A stretch of 63,526 nucleotides of DNA, counting the filler, from Octopus bimaculoides (lineage: Eukaryota), in the NCBI RefSeq assembly GCF_001194135.2. It is 5 parts of 5 records of this genome, joined end to end, with 100 filler letters (N's around TTAATTAATTAA, not from the genome) between each part and the next. Parts side by side here need not be neighbours in the genome. Positions count along the whole stretch, not along the records: positions 31,146 to 59,935 come from NC_068983.1; 4 more parts are not named here. One strand, written 5' to 3'. Shown here piece after piece: positions 31,146 through 59,935 of this stretch; the first letter of the stretch is position 1, and the number at the start of each line of letters is the position of its first letter. The notes beneath the pieces were generated by a model. It was not told where the DNA came from. It made no database searches and was given only the letters and a program-made list of their open reading frames with translations. The translations under genes were made by a program, and so were the position numbers.

Positions 31146-31378
31146 TTTAGTGTCCAGTTAAGGATGTGGTAGCTGTAGCTTATAACTGGGACAGCTAAAG
31201 TGTTGATACCCATTATCTTGTTTTTAGCATTGAGCTCTGTTTTTAGCATTGATCTAACTCGTCTATAGTACTCTTTCTTTATTTTTTCTTTCATTTGTGT
31301 ATGTTGTATCCTACCAAGTTCATTGACTCCTAAATACTTGTATGGTTGGCTTTCGTCTAGTTCTCTTATTTCATTGGC

Positions 31379-31432
<54 letters not shown>

Positions 31433-32400
31433 ATTATTGTTATTATCATTTCTCTTTATCACATGTTTGCTTGGTATTACTGGAGTCTTGCATGCGTAGC
31501 GAGCTTACTCCCTGCAGCCTATTGTACCATGCTGTCCGTCCTTTTTAGCTATCTAATGCTTTCCTGATTATTCTGGCTGTGCCAGGGAGGCAAGGCTTTT
31601 GTAATAGTTCTACTGGAAATTCTATTCCAGTTTCTTTTATATTCCTCTTGATACCTTCTCATACTTTTCCAAGCACGCAACAATAATTACCACTATCTTC
31701 ACTCTCTTCATTTTCCTTAGCCGAGTCATTTAGTACTTAAGAGGGTTGTATTTCTCGACTATTCGTGGGTCAAAGGGGTATGTAACATCAACATACAGCA
31801 CATGTAGTGAACCTTGTCCACTACCATTAGATCTGATCTGTTATGCTCTAAGCACCTGATTTTTTTTTGGATTGGGAAATCCCACAGTATTGAGCCAGTC
31901 TCCGACTCTGTCACCCTCTGCAGTTTGTGCTCATGCCACGTCTTGCTTCTCTCTAGTACCCACTTTTCACACATTTTCCAATGTAGGACCTCCGTGATCT
32001 GATCGTGTCGCCACAACTTGCAATGGTTTTGAGGAAGTCTAGAGCATTCTTTCGTGATATGGCCAATGATTTCATTCACTGTATTGCAGATACGGCACAG
32101 TGGAGACACTTTCTCATTCCTAAGTTTGACTCTCCAGTTTGTGGCCAAAGCTTGGTCTTGTGATGCCAGTACAGTGCTCTCGGTCTCTTTTCTTAGTGTT
32201 CCTTTCATCACCCAATCCTTTTTTCCAGCAACTTCTGTTGTAGCTACATGGAATTGATTGTGTAGTCCCTTCTTGCGTAATTCTTTTTCACCTCCCTTTT
32301 TCTACTTCTTCCTTTGTCTTTCCTTTTACTCTGCTTTCAATACTCTCTCCTTCCTAACTGTCACTAACAAAGTTTCCTTACTTTAGACTCGGTATCTCAT
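31146..32400 (-). mobile_element. R4/Dong LINE fragments separated by (AAT)n
   Basis: PYKYLGVNE...INTLAVPVISYS; ETESTVLASQDQAL...CRICNTVNEIIGHITKEC...ILWDFPIQ...NRSDL. Confidence 0.8.
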
Positions 32401-36322: not shown

Positions 36323-36526
36323 ATGGAAAAATCAGAAAATTTCGACGCTGCTACAAAGCAATTAACTAAATATATAATTGATTACTTCGGTAATATTGGA
36401 AGCAGAAATGCTTATCCTGCGGTTGAACCCGGATTCATGAAAACTTTAATACCAGCTGAAGCTCCTGAAACACCTGATAAATGGGAAAATGTGTTTAATG
36501 ATATCGAAAGAGTAATTATGCCAGGG
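36323..36526 (+). CDS. DDC-like: Decarboxylase coding exon 1 (MEKSENF...DIERVIMPG)
   Basis: YPAVEPGF motif; donor GTAAGT at 36527, phase 0. Confidence 0.95.
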
Positions 36527-42307: not shown

Positions 42308-45300
42308 GCATGCATTTAAACATACATACATACATACATATTCCATCTTTGGAATATGTATGTATTCTCGGCCTGAAGATCTGAAACGTAAGTTCTTCTC
42401 TAGCTTGATGACGGAGGCTGGTTTCATCCAATGTAAAATGCATTCACACTCTAACATTCAGAAATGAACAAATAATCGATCACAACATTTTGCTTCTCTC
42501 TATTTTTTCACGTAAATTTCATTGATTCACTCAACAAAAAATAATTTGAATATTTTTGTTGTGTAACTCTGATAATTTATAAAGGAATATATATCAGGAC
42601 TAGCACTTAAATCCTACCCAACAGGTCTGTCACTGGCACCATCCAAAGTTTGGTGCTTATTTCCCAGCACGAACCTCTTATGCTGCAATTCTGGCAGCAA
42701 TGTTGTCAGATGCTTTGGTGAATGTGGTAATTTCGTGGGTAAGTTATATTCCTTCATTTTGCATTTCCTGCATAAAAACTAGTTTTACGACTCGATGATT
42801 TATACGTCCATACATACACACACACATACATACATACATACATACATACACACATACATACATATGTATATATACACAGAATAATGAAAACATAGCAATG
42901 GTGTTGCCATAGGGTGCAGACCAGCTGGGAAAAGTTTTATCGAAACCGATTCACAGCTATTGGCGTGATTCTGGGTGTATATATACATGAGCGGTTGTGT
43001 GGTAAGTAGCTTGCTTACCAACTACATAGTTCCTGGTTCAATCCCACTGCGTGGCACCTGGGGCAAGTGTCTTCTACTAAAGGCTCGGGCCGACCGATGC
43101 CTTGTGAGTGTATGCATACATATGTATATACATACATATATGCATACATACATATATCTATCCACACAAACACATACATACAATAGCGCGGGCGTGGCTG
43201 TGTGGTAAGAAGCTTGCTTACCAACCACATGTTTCCGGGTTGAGTCCCATTGCGTGACACCTTGAGCAAGTGTCTTCTACTATAACCTCGGATCGACCAA
43301 AGAATTTCGAGTGGATTTCGTAGACGGAAACTGCAAAAGCCCGTCGGATATATATATATATATATNNNNNNNNNNNNNNNNNNNNNNNNNNNNNNNNNNN
43401 NNNNNNNNNNNNNNNNNNNNNNNNNNNNNNNNNNNNNNNNNNNNNNNNNNNNNNNNNNNNNNNNNNNNNNNNNNNNNNNNNNNNNNNNNNNNNNNNNNNN
43501 NNNNNNNNNNNNNNNNNNNNNNNNNNNNNNNNNNNNNNNNNNNNNNNNNNNNNNNNNNNNNNNNNNNNNNNNNNNNNNNNNNNNNNNNNNNNNNNNNNNN
43601 NNNNNNNNNNNNNNNNNNNNNNNNNNNNNNNNNNNNNNNNNNNNNNNNNNNNNNNNNNNNNNNNNNNNNNNNNNNNNNNNNNNNNNNNNNNNNNNNNNNN
43701 NNNNNNNNNNNNNNNNNNNNNNNNNNNNNNNNNNNNNNNNNNNNNNNNNNNNNNNNNNNNNNNNNNNNNNNNNNNNNNNNNNNNNNNNNNNNNNNNNNNN
43801 NNNNNNNNNNNNNNNNNNNNNNNNNNNNNNNNNNNNNNNNNNNNNNNNNNNNNNNNNNNNNNNNNNNNNNNNNNNNNNNNNNNNNNNNNNNNNNNNNNNN
43901 NNNNNNNNNNNNNNNNNNNNNNNNNNNNNNNNNNNNNNNNNNNNNNNNNNNNNNNNNNNNNNNNNNNNNNNNNNNNNNNNNNNNNNNNNNNNNNNNNNNN
44001 NNNNNNNNNNNNNNNNNNNNNNNNNNNNNNNNNNNNNNNNNNNNNNNNNNNNNNNNNNNNNNNNNNNNNNNNNNNNNNNNNNNNNNNNNNNNNNNNNNNN
44101 NNNNNNNNNNNNNNNNNNNNNNNNNNNNNNNNNNNNNNNNNNNNNNNNNNNNNNNNNNNNNNNNNNNNNNNNNNNNNNNNNNNNNNNNTATTCTGAATTG
44201 AGCAGGGGACGTATGGCTCGTGGTCCCAGCCTTGGATGAACCTTGAAACTAATGTTCAGGTCGTTTGGGCAATGCTGGCGGTATATTTTCCACGTCGTAC
44301 AAATAATGTACCGCTCGTGGCGGCGCTGGAGAGAGTAGAGCTTCAAAGTTTTAAGGCGGTCCCAGTAATCAATATCTATCATGCCTTCAATTCGTTTGGT
44401 GAGTGCCCTCTGGGGTGATTCAATCCTCGAGATGTTTTGTTTAGTATGGGGAGACCACAAGGGGCAGTAGTATTCGCGGTGTGGCCNNNNNNNNNNGGGG
44501 TGATTCAATCCTCGAGATGTTTTGTTTAGTATGGGGAGACCACAAGGGGCAGCAGTATTCGCGGTGTGGCCGTACAAAGGAGGAGAAAAGCGGAATGAGG
44601 ACACTTTGTTCTCTCGACCGGTAGGTTCTTAAGATCCAGGAGCTCATCCTACGAGCTATATTGGATCCTATTGTTGATATGGGCACTCCAATTGAGATTG
44701 TTGTCAACAATTACACCCAGATCTCTGATATTGTTGGATGTCGTGAGCGGTTCCCCTGAAGGAAGAATATATGTATACACGACTGGCTTCTTTCAGTTTC
44801 TGTCAACCAAATCCACTCACGAGGCTTTATTCGGCCCGAGGCTATAGTAGACGACACCTGCCGTAGGTGCCACGCAGTGGGATTGAACCCGGAACTATGT
44901 AGTTGGTAAGTAAGCTACTTACCACACAGCCACTCCTGTATATATACACCCAGAATCACACTAATAGCTTAAGAGTGTAATTTAGGATTTCTCGGTTTTC
45001 TGTGAATCGATTTTGATAAAACTTTTCCCGGCTGTTATGTTTTCATTATTCTATATAACGTCCTTTCCTTTTCAGTTCATATTCTTCAGTTTTGGGGTGA
45101 ACCACGCTAATAACGTCTGAACGAAAATACCTCATCTAGACATATTTTTTCATTAAAAAATGAAGGGTAAGGGTACATATATTAGCATACATTAAGTTTA
45201 TCTTTAACAGAAAACCATAATTATATTATAACAATGATGTAATGAATTATTTAGCCACATAAGCGCCATTTGGACGGATAACTTCAAAAACCCTCTTGGT

Positions 45301-54400: not shown

Positions 54401-57078
54401 TTGATAACATTAAAGAAATTGGTGCTGTATGTAAGTTGCTTTAATTATGTACCTAATTAATTTTCATACTAATTGGAAGCTACATCTTCCTCTTTACAGC
54501 TACTTTTTCCAGTAGTCGTAGTCATTTCCATTCGTAATATTCTAATTTCCTTGAGGACATTATTGTTATTAGCCACCCACAGCTAACATATTCCTCAGGG
54601 ATGAGCGCGTATAAATATATCTAATCTCAGATATCAAAAAACTAAAAAGAGGTTCNNNNNNNNNNNNNNNNNNNNNNNNNNNNNNNNNNNNNNNNNNNNN
54701 NNNNNNNNNNNNNNNNNNNNNNNNNNNNNNTATTGCTTGAAACGAAAGGGTAATAATGCTCAATTAGATTTTATAATCAAGTCTTTAATTCTGCTGCACC
54801 TCACTTCCAAGTACACATGGATAATATATTCTTTATAATTGAATATTTTTCTATTCAAGTACATAAGTTGATGCTATGCCAAGGTATAGTCTTAATATTT
54901 ATCAGATTCATTGAAAGTAAATACGATTGTGTCATAATTATGTGTTGTTTATTACAGGTAAAGATGAAGGTATCTGGTTGCACATAGACGCTGCATATGC
55001 AGGAAATGCATTTATATGTCCTGAATACCGTTATCTGATGAACGGTGTGGAAGTAAGTCCTAAGCAATTAATAAAACTGAAAATAACACACGGAGCTGTA
55101 GACTTCAATACTTTATTATGATGATAGATATTTTAAAGGTCTCATACATTAGAACATCTGCTATTTGTATTATTATTATTATTACTGAGATGCAACTAGT
55201 TATCTGACATAAAACGAAACTTTATTTGAGTAAAAGAGATAGAAAAGGTCAATGCAGATTAGCGACGGTTTCAGTTTAGTTTACAAATGAATAAAAAATT
55301 ATTCCAATTTCCCCCTCAATTTTAAACATCCTCAGTCCACATTAAACCGCAATATATGTACCACGTGGAGTGTACTTTTTGAGTTCAGTACCATCGTCTG
55401 AGTTCAGATCTTTGGGTTAATATATCACGTTAAATTTGATATTTTCAAATAAATTTAGAAGAAATATGTTTCATATTCAGTTTTTGGTTCCTATTTTATA
55501 GTATGCAGATTCCATTTGTATGAGTCCCCACAAATGGTTACAAGTACCTATAGGTTGTTCGGTATTATGGTAAGTAAATTTCCATTTAGTCTTCTTAAAA
55601 ACGTAAATTATTTTCTACGTTGATTAATGAATAAACATAAACAGAAATGTGTTATCAAGTCATGTGTATTTAATATATTTATTAAGAATAAACATTACCA
55701 TCAGCTTTTAGACTTGTAAACATTCAAGAGCAAAGAGTCTAGAGTCTAGAGTATGTATTTTCTATTCATGCATTATGCTTGTGGTTTAATTGTATTTACA
55801 AATACAGTAATGATTAAAAAAGTATTATAGAACCCTAAATAGTCAATCAGAAATAGGTTATCAAGATAGCACATAGTATTCCGATTTCTGAAATAGACGC
55901 ATAATATAGAATATTTTAAAAGTAGAATATTTTTATTCACCGAAATTCTGTTTTGTCTTTTAGGTTACAAAATAGCAATAAACTTGTCGATTCTATTCCC
56001 GAGCCTGGTGAATATTTGCAATGTACAGAGAATTCAGAAATGCCAAATTTTATGGTAAGATAATTTAACATTTTTCTATCTAATTTAATGTCTTCGACCA
56101 TACTGCACCAGTTGTTGTTACATTGGTTGAATCCCTGCTAAATATAGAAAGACGTTTGGAAGGTGATTATTGGTGAAGTATTGTTGCTTTAGGAAATTAT
56201 TTAAGAAGCTAGAATACTGAATATTGTGGAATGCTGAGGATCAAACGGGAAGATCACATCTATAGCTGTAAAAGATGTTGAAATGAGAGAATGAGAAAGA
56301 AAAGCAGCAGTAAACAGAGAAAATGAAGAATAATGAAAGATAACGATAAAAAGTAAGAAATGATTTCAAATTTCTGTGGCTTTGACTTTGAAGCTATAAC
56401 TTAAAATAAACCACACAGGTAATACTTGAAGACGGAGGTCATTATCAAAGAGCAAAGGGTAGGTAATGATTTTTCAAAAAGCGTATAGTGATATAAAAAG
56501 GTTTTGTTTGAACGTATAGGTATTGCAGTGCGAAGCAGTTTTCCTCTATACAATAAGTTTCATATTTCACAGTAAACTATCGAGTTAACTTTTATAAAGT
56601 CTACTCCAAATGCCAGAAAATATGATTGCTGATGCACCTGCCATATTTCCTAAACAACCTGATAAGATTTCCAGAAGCCGATGCTATGTATGATAATGAG
56701 AAAATAGCATAAAGTGGCTTTAACCAAAACAAAGTAAGTTTCTACAGAATGTCCTGACTTCTACAAATCCTTTTTCTTAAAATGTTTCAATGAGGCACAT
56801 GAAAATCATCCAAAGATTAAATGAAAAAGATTATTAAGTATTTCAAATAAAATAGGAAAAGGGGTTGTTCCTTGTGTATGAATATCTCTTTTAGATAAAA
56901 TTACCAACTCTACTAATCTATACAACGGCATTGATTTCAGATATAAAATTATTTCAAGATATATTCAATTATGTCAATAATGTGCCTGGTGTACCCTTAT
57001 TAGACGGGTAATCATGATAGGGATATTGAGCCACTTATTTTTAACCAGCGATAATTCATAAATAAATCTTGTTTTGCT

Positions 57079-57147
<69 letters not shown>

Positions 57148-57491
57148 CTTGTTTGGGAATGAGTATCATGTATGATTCTCAGATGCCAGGGAAATAAACC
57201 CTCTGTATTACATGTGATACATAGGACAGGCTAAGTTTTGAAAAGTCTAATTGTTCATTTATTTGAAGTGTCTACATGGATCTGTACAATTATATGCTGC
57301 TACAAAAACGAACACAGAAAATCATACTCACACATGTCAAGTAATCGTGTGTACTTTATAGTAAATGTTGTACATCGCAATCTTTATTTTAAACTTGGCA
57401 AATTCCTTGTGGACGTCCGTTTCGATCTCTGAAACTTTGGTTTGTTTTACGAATCTTTGGGATACACAGACTTCAGGAACTCATCAGAAAG
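36323..57491 (+). CDS. DDC-like: Aromatic-L-amino-acid decarboxylase family paralog (group II PLP-dependent); 10 coding exons, 379 aa, 3'-partial
   Basis: Spliced protein aligns to DDC with only two small indels (+1 aa in exon 1, -2 aa in exon 9); [19 protein letters not shown] (PLP lysine) and FRSLKLW motifs; exon lengths 204/114/120/135/144/67/95/68/91/99; orthology to DDC, TDC or HDC not established. Confidence 0.93.
38427..40760 (+). mobile_element. Decayed Penelope-like element (RT + GIY-YIG) with inverted 5' terminal repeat, in coding intron 1
   Basis: [52 protein letters not shown]; 38427-38545 is an inverted copy of 40431-40555. Confidence 0.85.
40880..41840 (-). mobile_element. Tc1/mariner (maT-like) transposase fragments
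   Basis: [20 protein letters not shown] scrap; WPPNSPDLN...[11 protein letters not shown]; TIR-like tacacagggtgc at ~41198. Confidence 0.7.
42625..42738 (+). CDS. DDC-like: Decarboxylase coding exon 2 ([38 protein letters not shown])
   Basis: CAG acceptor, GTAAGT donor, 114 nt as in DDC. Confidence 0.92.
44190..44760 (-). mobile_element. CR1-group LINE RT C-terminal fragment
   Basis: [19 protein letters not shown]...[16 protein letters not shown]. Confidence 0.8.
44947..46334 (-). mobile_element. Tc1-like transposon with DD37E spacing and ~110-140-bp TIRs
   Basis: FMHDN...SPDLNLIEN with 37 residues between D and E; TIR CACCCAGAA(T/C)CAC at both ends; TA on the left, TG on the right. Confidence 0.85.
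46945..47130 (+). mobile_element. Short RTE LINE 3' fragment
   Basis: [41 protein letters not shown]. Confidence 0.6.
47502..47621 (+). CDS. DDC-like: Decarboxylase coding exon 3 ([10 protein letters not shown]...GGGVIQ)
   Basis: CAG acceptor, GTAAGT donor, 120 nt. Confidence 0.95.
47773..47907 (+). CDS. DDC-like: Decarboxylase coding exon 4 ([16 protein letters not shown]...LIAYKSEE)
   Basis: TAG acceptor, GTAAGT donor, 135 nt. Confidence 0.92.
48523..48759. mobile_element. mariner-derived foldback MITE
   Basis: TA|TTTGGTTGGACATAAT ... ATTATGCACCAACCTAA|TA; ~100-bp inverted arms; TIR resembles TTAGGTTGGTGCA mariner ends. Confidence 0.8.
49380..49740 (-). mobile_element. Penelope-like RT fragment
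   Basis: [21 protein letters not shown] motif. Confidence 0.7.
50703..50846 (+). CDS. DDC-like: Decarboxylase coding exon 5 (THSSFAKAC...GLVPFY)
   Basis: CAG acceptor, GTAAGT donor, 144 nt; His192 equivalent present. Confidence 0.95.
51930..52360 (-). mobile_element. CR1-group LINE AP-endonuclease fragment
   Basis: [15 protein letters not shown]...TYRPP...DNILDLCF. Confidence 0.75.
52984..53080 (+). repeat. ~31-bp AT-rich minisatellite, 3 copies
   Basis: atattatattatattcatagtatattatgt repeated. Confidence 0.85.
53690..54290 (+). mobile_element. Decayed RTE (BovB-like) RT fragment
   Basis: [12 protein letters not shown]...IVQSFEYL...[13 protein letters not shown]; ends ~70 nt before exon 6. 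Confidence 0.65.
54364..54430 (+). CDS. DDC-like: Decarboxylase coding exon 6 ([22 protein letters not shown])
   Basis: CAG acceptor, GTAAGT donor, 67 nt, ends in phase 1. Confidence 0.95.
54958..55052 (+). CDS. DDC-like: Decarboxylase coding exon 7 ([16 protein letters not shown]...NGVE)
   Basis: CAG acceptor, GTAAGT donor, 95 nt. Confidence 0.96.
55502..55569 (+). CDS. DDC-like: Decarboxylase coding exon 8 ([23 protein letters not shown]), PLP lysine
   Basis: TAG acceptor, GTAAGT donor, 68 nt. Confidence 0.95.
55964..56054 (+). CDS. DDC-like: Decarboxylase coding exon 9 ([20 protein letters not shown]...MPNFM), catalytic loop
   Basis: TAG acceptor, GTAAGA donor, 91 nt; Tyr falls exactly on DDC Tyr332. 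Confidence 0.88.
57393..57491 (+). CDS. DDC-like: Decarboxylase coding exon 10 ([16 protein letters not shown]...ELIRK) with non-canonical AA acceptor
   Basis: 99 nt as in DDC; donor GTGAGT at 57492; acceptor dinucleotide 57391-57392 reads AA. Confidence 0.88.
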
Positions 57492-59156
57492 GTGAGTTTA
57501 CTGTCTTATTGTACAAGCTGTGGCTATCGTTCTTACTATAACATCAAACTTATCTCTGCTCATAAGATGTATAATTGCCATGACATTGGAGAAATGCTAA
57601 GAATATATAGCGAATAGCTATATTATACTAATTTACTTAAACATCCAGGAAATGAATTAACAAGGAGGCATAGCGTTTTCTAATTATATAACTCTGAACA
57701 TTATTTACATTTGACGGATATTTGTCCACAACGTTTCGGCTGATATACCCTCCAGGAAATGGGGAAAATTTTGAACCTGTATATTTTTTTATGCTTGTCA
57801 GGTATTTTTTGTTATTATTATTATTATTATTATTAAGGTCACTGCCTGGAATCGAACTCGGAATCTTGAGGTTAGTAGCCCGCGCTCTTAACCACTACGC
57901 TATATGCCCGTGGCCAATTATGGAGTGAATTTTAGGGTTTATAAATCTAATATTTTCTTATCCTTCCTTAATATGCTATTCATATCTACACTTGGTCTGC
58001 TTAGGAGGTTGTTGTGTCCTAGCATATGTGCTGCTTCTTTTAGTTTTCGTATTTTCCAGTGGTTTTCTCTGTCTATCATTTTAACTTCATCCCACAGGGG
58101 AGGTGTTCTCCATTTTTCCATACGTGATCAGCTATACCCTATTTATTAATATCTCCTCGTGTCACAGCTTTGCGATGTTCCTCTATCTTTATTTTGGATT
58201 GGGCGGCATGTTTCGCCTTTGTATAGCCTACCACAGCTGCATGGGATGGAGTACACGCAGTTTCTGGTGATATTCTCTTCTATTCGTGGTTTTACTCGAA
58301 GGAGATATTTGAGATGTGTTGTATTACTTTTGAATACTGTCCTGATGTCATATGGGCCGCATATCTTTTGTATCTTTTCAGAGAGGCCTTCAACATAGGG
58401 TACACAGACTGAGGACAGTTTATCAGTTTCATCCTCTTTTCTTCATAATTGGAGTGGAGTGTATGCTTTTGGGGTAGTTGTTGCATAATAGATTGTTAGT
58501 GAGCTTGATCATTTCTTCGTGGTGGGTATCACGATCGCTACTCATATTCATTGCTCGATGTTTTAGGCACTGAGCAATCCTTTTCTTTACACTGTATGGA
58601 TGGTGGGAATTGGAGTTGAGGTATCGTCCAGTGAAGGTTGTCTTGCGATATACGGATGTCCTGAATCCCTACTTGGTGTGTGTTATTAATACATCCAGGA
58701 ATGTTTGCTGATTGTCTTTTTCCTTTTCCATTGTAAACTGTATGGATGGCTTTATTGAGTTCACATGATCTAACAGCACTTGAACATCTTCCTGGTGGGG
58801 CCAGAGTATGACGGTGTCATCAGCATATCGCAGCCATAGGGTTGGTTTTAGTGGTGTTGAGTCTAAAGCAAAATTCTTAAAGTAGTCCGTGTATATATTG
58901 CCTATTATCGGTAATAATGGCGAACTCATAGCTAAACCCTCTTCTTGTCGATATATATCAGTGTCCATACTGAAGTAGGTAGTTTCTACACTACTGATAT
59001 ATATCTACACACGAAAACTAAAAAACATATGCTAGGACACAACAACCTCCTAAGTCGACCAAGTGCGGATATGAACAGTATATGGGAACCAGTGTTAAGG
59101 AAGTATAGGAGAATATTAGATTTATAAGATCTAAAATTCACTCCATAATTGCTCAC

Positions 59157-59229
59157 GGGCATATGGCGTAGTGATTAAGATCGCGGGCTACTAACTTAAG
59201 ATTCCGTGTTCGATTCCAGGCAGTAACCT
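59157..59229 (+). ncRNA. tRNA-like Pol III module inside the Penelope terminal repeat (mirror copy at 57836-57909, minus strand)
   Basis: A box TGGCGTAGTG(G/A), B box GTTCGATTCC; tRNA-derived rather than a true tRNA gene. Confidence 0.65.
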
Positions 59230-59304
59230 AAATAATAATATTAATAACAACATCAAAAAATACCTTAGGAATGAGAACCCAGGTTCAAAATTTCCCCAAG
59301 ACAC

Positions 59305-59345
59305 CTAATGAAGGCTGGTGGGTATATCAGCCAAAACGTTGCGTT
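59305..59345 (+). ncRNA. Degenerate hammerhead-ribozyme core in the Penelope terminal repeat
   Basis: CTAATGA-a-GGCTG...CAGCC-AAAAC; the mirror arm keeps CAGCC-GAAAC, implying a CTGATGA...GAAAC consensus. Confidence 0.55.
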
Positions 59346-59689
59346 ATCAACAAACAAGATGAGGACAAATATCCGTCAAATATAAATAATGTAAATAATG
59401 TACATAATTCCTCATCTCTTAAATATAGAACTATATAACTCTGAAGTTGAAAAGCTACAAAATAATGAACGTTCGACTAGGAAAACTCTGCAAACCGATT
59501 CATAATTAACAGAGAATTCCAGTGAAAATTAGGAAAAAATTATAAATCAATGAAAAATACCAACTATCCAATGAATACATCTAATTTTTATGGTTTCACG
59601 ATTTTAATCAAATATGATATTATTGGTACAATCTTAACTTAACTATCTCATATATATATATATATATATATAGGAAAATGTAAAAAATC

Positions 59690-59935
59690 TAAGAGACTTA
59701 CAACAGGACAAAAGCCTTACTATCAAAGAAGCTGACAAAGGTAGTACTGTAGTCCTAATGAACACAGATTTTTACAAACACCTAGCACTCTCCTTACTAA
59801 ACGATAACTCCTTCTATGAAACTATCACCAACTATAAACAACAAAAAACTCTCAAAAACCTCACCACCCTTATACTCCAGCAAGGTCAAGGACTCACGGA
59901 CAAAGAAAAAGATTACATCACTAATTTCAAATGCA
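59690..59935 (+). mobile_element. Penelope-like RT N-terminal fragment before a gap
   Basis: IKEADKGSTVVLMNTDFYKHLALSLLND...KEKDYITNF. Confidence 0.7.

Follow-up and report, generated by a model that had tools for sequence, protein, structure and literature searches.

DDC-derived paralogues of Octopus keep the pyridoxal phosphate core and replace the active-site loops

Introduction

Aromatic-L-amino-acid decarboxylase, or AADC, is normally encoded by a single, slowly evolving gene, DDC, which makes dopamine and serotonin. In human AADC, Ile101 and Phe103 touch the catechol ring of the substrate and Thr82 binds its 4′-OH, the phosphate of the cofactor pyridoxal 5′-phosphate (PLP) is held by Ala148, Asn300 and His302, and Arg347 latches loop3 via Asp345 and His348 (PMC8003434, PMC12443470). 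Replacement G102S displaces Phe103, F103L, D345A and R347K affect catalysis, and R347Q/G and L353P are described as "catalytic mutations" by which function is almost totally lost (PMC8003434, PMC12443470). In insects, the 3,4-dihydroxyphenylacetaldehyde (DHPAA) synthase has Asn at position 192 (PMC13651850). Here we describe an AADC-family gene of Octopus bimaculoides, referred to as gene A, which lies on the + strand of a window of 63,526 nucleotides (five joined parts of assembly GCF_001194135.2), within the piece at positions 31146–59935. Gene A is one of three DDC-derived copies that stand next to the original gene in Octopus; their changes fall on positions otherwise without variation among animals, residues affected in human AADC deficiency among them, while the chemical core is kept. 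We consider it somewhat probable that the three encode neofunctionalised decarboxylases.

The piece matches chromosome CM046603.1 of O. bimaculoides assembly GCA_001194135.2 base for base, N gaps included; it is AT-rich (35% G+C), full of repeats and interrupted by several N runs. Gene A has 12 exons, of which exons 1–10 fall inside the piece, and its product corresponds to RefSeq XP_014775469.1 (P0121; 485 aa). The labels B (XP_014775473.1) and C (XP_014775474.1) denote the octopus paralogues, and DDC denotes the canonical neighbour gene. Residue numbers throughout are those of human AADC, with the frame checked against PDB 3rbf; in that alignment, query numbering equals human numbering plus one until the catalytic loop, where a two-residue deletion follows. 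Positions are those of the window, which exceed the coordinates of the chromosomal locus (L001) by 26322.

Three paralogues derived from cephalopod DDC

The original prediction had taken gene A for a paralogue of AADC, and this was upheld by the company it keeps. A canonical DDC with all standard residues is present in O. bimaculoides (XP_014775466.1, P0324), O. sinensis (P0008), O. vulgaris, Argonauta and Sepia; it is adjacent to the cluster in O. sinensis and O. vulgaris, and carries a neighbouring accession in O. bimaculoides. In a neighbour-joining distance tree with bootstrapping, rooted on a verified HDC representative, A, B and C formed a clade (100%), within which A grouped with B (100%). 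This clade was nested with the cephalopod canonical DDCs, to the exclusion of other molluscs, likewise at 100%, this support applying to the grouping and not to its split point inside the cephalopods. Gene A is 59% identical to octopus DDC, and its identity to the DDCs of other molluscs is 53–54%, compared to 65–66% for the canonical octopus protein. Among 1.84 billion representatives clustered at 50% identity there was a single neighbouring match, an intron-retaining model of gene C, and the rest did not exceed 48%.

Gene A does bear the RefSeq name "aromatic-L-amino-acid decarboxylase" and has AADC as its best match in the PDB, as would a plain octopus DDC/TDC orthologue whose unusual residues were simply normal for molluscs. 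That explanation is already refuted by the tree and the residue table and retains practically no probability: five cephalopods have a separate canonical DDC, which retains the higher identity to mollusc relatives, gene A is placed apart from it in a distinct clade, and the substitutions of gene A are not common in molluscs.

In O. bimaculoides, gene A (+) is convergent with gene B (−) at a distance of 3.5 kb on the same scaffold, C is found upstream of B and, still farther out, a gene for an OATP-type transporter. In O. sinensis, the genes follow each other on one strand as C, B and, after ~45 kb, the canonical DDC, and in O. vulgaris the order is OATP, C, B, DDC. On one chromosome, the OATP transporter is thus followed by C, B, A (in O. 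bimaculoides, where it is inverted) and DDC. The transporter seen upstream of C in O. bimaculoides and O. vulgaris is of the OATP/SLCO organic-anion type (PF03137; L004 1–2703 and L008 1–2632).

Members of the A/B/C clade turned up in O. bimaculoides, O. sinensis and O. vulgaris alone; Argonauta yielded the canonical DDC only, with no clade copy in its 10-kb flanks. No orthologue of gene A was found among the O. sinensis and O. vulgaris proteins, in the 10 kb downstream of B or in the 10 kb upstream of DDC, with the ~24.7 kb in between uncovered. The earlier suggestion of a cephalopod-specific paralogue was therefore correct as to descent, since the clade derives from cephalopod DDC, and too broad as to distribution, since the clade was found only in Octopus. 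The most fitting description is a tandem expansion of DDC restricted to Octopus. A description of multiple DDC-derived genes in octopus was not found in the literature, and one salivary-gland expression paper mentioned no decarboxylase. A query of Logan-derived protein fragments with the C-terminal half returned only matches of ≤48% identity; known full-length octopus proteins were also unlisted there, and this result is hence uninformative.

Active-site residues kept and replaced

The product of gene A matches the Pfam domain PF00282 (Pyridoxal_deC) with 447.1 bits against a gathering cut-off of 27, covering profile positions 1–375 of 375, and its best solved relatives are human AADC (3rbf, 2e-145), HDC (1e-131) and GAD/CSAD (~1e-31). 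Its residues were tabulated in a family alignment of 118 sequences, 106 of which are AADC-type sequences from outside the clade, including more than 15 molluscs. This table reproduced all residues that had been noted as retained (W71, Y79, F80, H192, T246, D271, H302, K303, Y332 and G354), as well as all of the noted changes (T82A, I101V, G102V, F103I, G146N, A148S, S149T, N300S, N308P, F309I, D310G, L353C and R356P). Gene A moreover carries T69C, C100N, P330G, K334Q, H335C, D345N, Y346F, R347M and H348T, which had gone unmentioned. No other family member departs from four of the replaced residues (G102, F103, S149 and D310; 106/106), and nine more (C100, A148, F309, H335, D345, R347, H348, L353 and R356) are nearly invariant. 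T82A is unremarkable by itself, as Ala occupies this position in 20/106.

The clade keeps K303, D271, H192, H302, Y332, G354, R355 and R447. Present are the Schiff-base Lys in its (N/S)-P-H-K motif, the Asp that binds the pyridine nitrogen (D271), the ring-stacking His (H192) and, in each of A, B and C, the proton-donor Tyr332; with T246 added, the first shell is whole in A and B. Replaced throughout the clade are G102 (Val), F103 (Ile), S149 (Thr) and D310 (Gly or Ser), N300 and C111, and the loop3 network of P330, H335, D345, R347, H348, L353 and R356. In gene A, the catechol/indole pocket of DDC is altered at T82A, I101V, G102V, F103I and L353C, and the loop3 network at D345N, R347M and H348T, with the YLKH motif reading YLQC and P330 turned into Gly. 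Together with the roles described for these positions (PMC8003434), the residue table bears out the claim that the substrate pocket has been rebuilt.

Retention of H192 and Y332 had been taken to mark a decarboxylase. In plant aromatic aldehyde synthases, the catalytic Tyr is replaced by Phe. Neither this exchange nor that of H192 to Asn was found in A, B or C, which argues against the known aldehyde-synthase signatures. This also bears on the alternative that the clade binds PLP for decarboxylation with a changed outcome, as an aldehyde synthase or oxidative deaminase (releasing aldehyde, NH3 and H2O2), or that it catalyses some other PLP reaction. Altered loop closure might then leave the quinonoid not cleanly protonated, and the catalytic loop is in fact two residues shorter and carries P330G, K334Q and H335C, next to a latch in which D345N and R347M/T are found and H348 is lost. 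It is loop closure that decides between decarboxylation and side reactions in AADC (PMC8003434), and in insects H192N turns DDC into DHPAA synthase, tuned by loop residues 328 and 330 (PMC13651850). With both known switch signatures absent, however, we regard a changed reaction as quite unlikely.

Sequence evolution of the copies

Nei-Gojobori dN/dS amounted to 0.39 for A–B, 0.46 for A–C and 0.33 for B–C (exons 1–11 in the latter case); with the B orthologues of two species included, values ranged from 0.33 to 0.62 and all remained below 1. The A, B and C genes are constrained but fast-evolving. The rest of the family is ≥95% conserved at 145 sites; each of the four clade sequences carries a replacement at 24 of them, and 13 of these 24 have become one identical residue (e.g. 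T69C, G102V, F103I, C111A, S149T and H335C). Gene A has zero private changes at these highly conserved sites. The replacements were enriched in active-site segments (12/44 versus 12/101; Fisher p = 0.029), the borders of these segments having been chosen post hoc. This pattern is that of an active-site-centred burst followed by retention, and it fits redesign better than uniform decay.

Exons 6–9 of gene A, together with introns 6–8, constitute a tract that is 93–97% identical to B, introns included (Table 1). In its coding part, A and B differ at 5 sites only, and exons 6–9 are 98% identical. Outside of this tract, gene A shows 72–92% identity in exons only, with exons 1–2 at ~72–80% to B or C, and with exon 10 nearer to C (92%) than to B (83%). 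From this mosaic of identities, we infer that recent gene conversion overwrote the exons for the PLP lysine and the catalytic loop of A with B sequence.

A region with many gaps and with exons 6–9 this similar to B also raises the question of an assembly or annotation artefact, in which contigs were misjoined across N gaps or A and B were collapsed, the more so as annotations of the cluster are chimeric elsewhere (a C+B model in O. sinensis, and P0316, joining B and DDC, in O. vulgaris). We nevertheless consider this very improbable. Gene A agrees exactly with B, C and DDC in exon order, phases and lengths, the tract still differs from B by ~3–7%, introns included, sequence is contiguous over 54731–59935 with an A-specific exon 10, and A and B occupy opposite strands of one scaffold.

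A deviant splice acceptor in front of exon 10

Across A, B and C, 32 of the 33 introns are GT-AG, and the sole exception is intron 9 of gene A, with AA for AG at its end. The deviation corresponds to a single G-to-A change at position 57392 relative to B, the O. sinensis B, C and the canonical DDC: the junction reads TAA|ACT TGG in A and TAG|NNN TGG in these other genes, so that an in-frame TAA arises at 57390–57392. By inspection, upstream AGs near 57392 run straight into stops, and the first AG inside exon 10 shifts the frame. Skipping of exon 10 (99 nt) would be in frame, as in UniProt entry A0A0L8H5W6, and removes W349–K380, including G354 and R355. The RefSeq models include exon 10 across the AA site.

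If real, the change at 57392 should force either in-frame skipping of exon 10 or nonsense products; in that case gene A could represent an allele defective in splicing, or a pseudogene of very recent origin within a family that otherwise functions. A U12-type AT-AC intron was considered for the absent AG and dismissed, as the intron has no U12 donor motifs and the donor of exon 9 is an ordinary GTAAGA. Alternatively, though with lower probability, inclusion of exon 10 could depend on A-to-I editing (AI being read as AG), by which production of the enzyme would itself become editing-dependent. Such rescue of the AA acceptor was unsupported in that the local fold was not better than that of shuffled sequences (z = −1.45) and the site has no pairing partner in the form of a long inverted repeat.

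Further RefSeq isoforms of gene A (P0002, P0007 and P0122) omit exon 2 (114 nt), exon 4 (135 nt) or both without loss of frame, with X2/X3 skipping exon 4. If real, these isoforms would come without loop1/loop2 or without the phosphate-binding turn, and would be inactive.

Putative mechanism and activity of the clade

From the residues kept and replaced, a scenario can be proposed for the clade. The duplicates would have arisen from cephalopod DDC, with fast change concentrated in three active-site loops, after which the new state would have become largely fixed across all three copies and across species. Each product is predicted to be a fold-type-I PLP enzyme that works as a dimer, in which PLP would form a Schiff base with the lysine of SPHK (human K303), H192 would stack on the ring, D271 would bind the ring nitrogen, and the phosphate would be held by the Ser/Thr-rich turn and H302. 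An incoming amino acid would displace the lysine and then lose CO2, the resulting carbanion would be protonated by the loop tyrosine (the Y332 equivalent) with H192, and the amine would be released. The presumed side-chain pocket has neither the hydroxyl of Thr82 nor the aromatic wall of Phe103, its lining being Ala, Val, Val, Ile and Cys, and the Arg347/Asp345/His348 latch that closes loop3 in DDC is replaced. Because of these pocket and latch changes, the preferred substrate would most likely not be L-DOPA or 5-hydroxytryptophan (5-HTP), but an amino acid that is less polar or differs in some other way. We accordingly lean towards A, B and C being neofunctionalised PLP decarboxylases acting on a substrate other than DOPA or 5-HTP, and hold this to be somewhat better than an even proposition.

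Several observations weigh against this. Single changes of human AADC at G102, F103, D345, R347, L353, N300 and C111 reduce or nearly abolish catalysis, and all of these positions are altered in the clade. As single changes suffice to cripple the human enzyme, the "intact catalysis" of the original prediction is unproven: the first-shell PLP and proton-donor residues support it, but the second-shell closing network has been replaced, dN/dS is elevated (0.33–0.62) and gene A has the AA acceptor. The closing network may either have been rebuilt co-adaptively or activity may have been lost, and the combined changes could mean a dead rather than a re-tuned enzyme. Between the B orthologues of two species, dS was 0.113 and dN 0.070, yielding an omega of 0.62, which is high for a metabolic enzyme, and protein divergence of B was ~2× that of canonical DDC for the same species pair (0.122 versus 0.057). 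Paralogue C has Val at T246, and the O. vulgaris copy of C has D271E. An AlphaFold2 monomer model reached an overall predicted local distance difference test (pLDDT) score of 82.9 and a predicted template modelling (pTM) score of 0.84, with pLDDT falling below 50 in exactly the three active-site loops, so that it provides no usable pocket geometry. To these come the post hoc borders of the enriched segments and the inactivity expected of the exon-skipping isoforms. Finally, the change at 57392 could turn out to be a base-calling error, and the part of our reading that concerns a defective copy would then fall away.

The elevated omega leaves room for relaxed, decaying duplicates, i.e. non-catalytic proteins or dying genes that have lost activity, with A already a unitary pseudogene by its splice mutation. 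This is unlikely in our estimate, though it is the rival that we take most seriously. Replacement of the G102/F103/D345/R347/L353 network, near-null already as single changes in human AADC, would suit it, as would the rate of the B proteins, the substitutions T246V and D271E in C, the AA acceptor and annotated exon-skipping isoforms of gene A, and the lack of an A orthologue in the O. sinensis and O. vulgaris proteins and the 20 kb of flanks inspected. Decay is harder to reconcile with full-length open reading frames (ORFs) in all three genes and canonical introns in all cases but one despite a dS of 0.36–0.71, with paralogue omega values well below 1, and with the 13 of 24 conserved-site replacements that A, B and C have in common and that persist between species. 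Moreover, the first-shell residues are kept in A and B, the replacements cluster in the active-site loops, and gene conversion holds the central exons of A nearly identical to those of B.

Going beyond neofunctionalisation as such, the clade might constitute an Octopus-private decarboxylase family with a substrate outside DOPA, 5-HTP and Tyr, whose amine (in signalling, venom or saliva) would be unique by its route among animals. We put this forward only tentatively, as doubtful. If the copies are active, they would provide a natural experiment in rebuilding the G102-F103-R347-L353 closing network, and possibly a lineage-specific source of amines in an animal long known for its amine-rich salivary glands. 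If inactive, they would instead represent a clean case of slow decay buffered by gene conversion.

Gene structure and features of the locus

The exons of gene A were placed with a tblastn probe and then by exact spliced mapping of XP_014775469.1 (Table 1). The range originally assigned to the gene, from 42625 to 57491, covers exons 2–10 and leaves out exon 1. The spliced coding sequence of the 12 exons translates exactly to 485 aa, and no frameshift, premature stop or intron loss was found. In A, B and C alike, exons 1–11 measure 204, 114, 120, 135, 144, 67, 95, 68, 91, 99 and 102 nt, and the 12-exon structure is shared by the canonical DDC gene. Six N runs fall between exons 2 and 10, all of them intronic (two in intron 2, one in intron 4, two in intron 5 and one in intron 6), and since the exons form a collinear in-frame chain with lengths matching those of B and C, no coding exon is hidden in a gap. 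Exon 9 is very divergent and two residues shorter than in DDC, and was missed by the first probe with the human sequence. A frame-shifted "NLYFKLG" just upstream of WQIP was initially a candidate for the Y332 loop, and was ruled out once exon 9 had been found.

Table 1. Coordinates of gene A and of other features of the locus (window positions, unless given as L001, the chromosomal locus)
Feature	Position	Strand	Description
Exon 1	36323–36526	+	Met1–Gly68; donor GGG|gtaagt; found by ORF, tblastn and spliced mapping
Exon 2	42625–42738	+	active-site loop1 and loop2; W71, Y79, F80, T82A, C100N, I101V, G102V, F103I
Exon 3	47502–47621	+	peptide ends GGGVIQ
Exon 4	47773–47907	+	phosphate-binding turn NSST (G146N, S147, A148S, S149T)
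Exon 5	50703–50846	+	H192 in THSS
Gene-conversion tract	54283–56086	+	exons 6–9 and introns 6–8; counterpart in B at L002 23954–26051
Exon 6	54364–54430	+	T246 in STLGTTS
Exon 7	54958–55052	+	D271
Exon 8	55502–55569	+	N300S; PLP-lysine motif SPHKW (Lys codon 55532–55534), then VPIGCS (N308P, F309I, D310G); donor TG|gtaagt, phase 2
Exon 9	55964–56054	+	catalytic loop; Tyr332 equivalent 56013–56015; P330G, K334Q, H335C, D345N, Y346F, R347M
End of intron 9	57391–57392	+	AA instead of AG
Exon 10	57393–57491	+	99 nt; H348T, L353C, G354, R355, R356P
Exon 11	L001 36819–36920	+	outside the piece, past more gaps
Exon 12	L001 44615–44830	+	outside the piece, past more gaps
Transposase remnant, DDE-type (Tc1/mariner-like)	45370–46016	−	intron 2; PF13358 DDE_3, E=4e-8, ORF 45370–45684
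Retroelement debris	58669–58968, 31759–32211, 43015–44604, 52051–52395	−	flanks and introns
Inverted repeat	59256–59436		181 bp; repeated inverted near the end of gene A (L001 44299–44469, 87% identical)
Microsatellites, (CATA/TGTA/TATG)n type	41916–43260, 49000–49330, 57069–57130		long; spurious "YVCMYVCM" and "HTHTH" ORFs on both strands

Annotation of the cluster and repeats

In RefSeq, A, B and C bear the names of ordinary AADC isoforms, and the O. bimaculoides genes B and C are merged into a single gene with isoforms. Several models are chimeric (P0003–P0007 and P0316; loci L002, L004 and L005/L003): the O. sinensis X2 model runs from the first half of C into the second half of B, and the O. 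vulgaris protein CAI9719283 (900 aa) fuses B with the canonical DDC. P0167 is the intron-retaining model of gene C. With a name shared with DDC, B and C merged, a B–DDC fusion and a model that skips exon 10, these annotations mislead expression studies that rely on "DDC" read counts.

The matches of the retroelement debris are weak and below Pfam cut-offs (reverse transcriptase PF00078, E=3e-4; zf-RVT, E=3e-3), and other ORFs resembling long interspersed nuclear elements have no Pfam match. Most assembly gaps are flanked by (TA)n or (TATG)n repeats. In O. sinensis, the region downstream of B (L003 55224–58250) contains at least six copies of a ~92-aa ORF (MHTSVSALTRELLMQSKCPCFFSASVHSNVNGKANPSF...), in tandem and inverted, on both strands; the place taken by this array is that of the 3′ end of gene A in O. 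bimaculoides.

Comparison with known decarboxylases

GAD65 (2OKK), CSAD (2JIS) and GADL1 (6ENZ) share the group II fold with gene A, at a similarity of ~1e-31 to 1e-34 as opposed to 1e-145 for AADC. The hexapeptide V-P-x-x-C-S that follows the PLP lysine of gene A resembles what we take to be the corresponding GAD motif. The proposed GAD-like character of VPIGCS is confined to the hexapeptide itself; the 31-residue segment around the lysine still matches AADC best (9e-7, versus 8e-3 for GAD65). HDC (PDB 4E1O), the second-best solved relative, has the same fold and mechanism as gene A. It has Ser354, whereas gene A keeps Gly, in line with the DDC-like Gly354 noted before, and the HDC representative is the outgroup of the tree and not a sister.

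Canonical AADC/DDC (EC 4.1.1.28; PDB 3RBF; octopus XP_029633174.1 / XP_014775466.1) is the gene that gene A adjoins and from which it descends. Both have the Pfam domain, 12 exons, the PLP-lysine motif and H192, D271, H302, Y332, G354, R355 and R447. In contrast to canonical DDC, gene A replaces T82, I101, G102, F103, A148, S149, N300 and the NFD at 308–310, as well as P330, K334, H335 and D345-R347-H348-L353-R356, and it has a loop that is two residues shorter and evolves ~2× faster.

The insect DHPAA synthase, or alpha-methyldopa-resistant protein (PDB 6JRL), resembles the octopus clade in being a lineage-specific DDC duplicate with changes in the active site and loops. The score of gene A to 6JRL is 6e-117, weaker than that to AADC, and the duplications are independent. 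H192N is what defines the insect enzyme; in the octopus clade H192 is kept and a different set of residues is changed. The insect synthase offers a precedent for neofunctionalisation of a duplicated DDC (PMC13651850).

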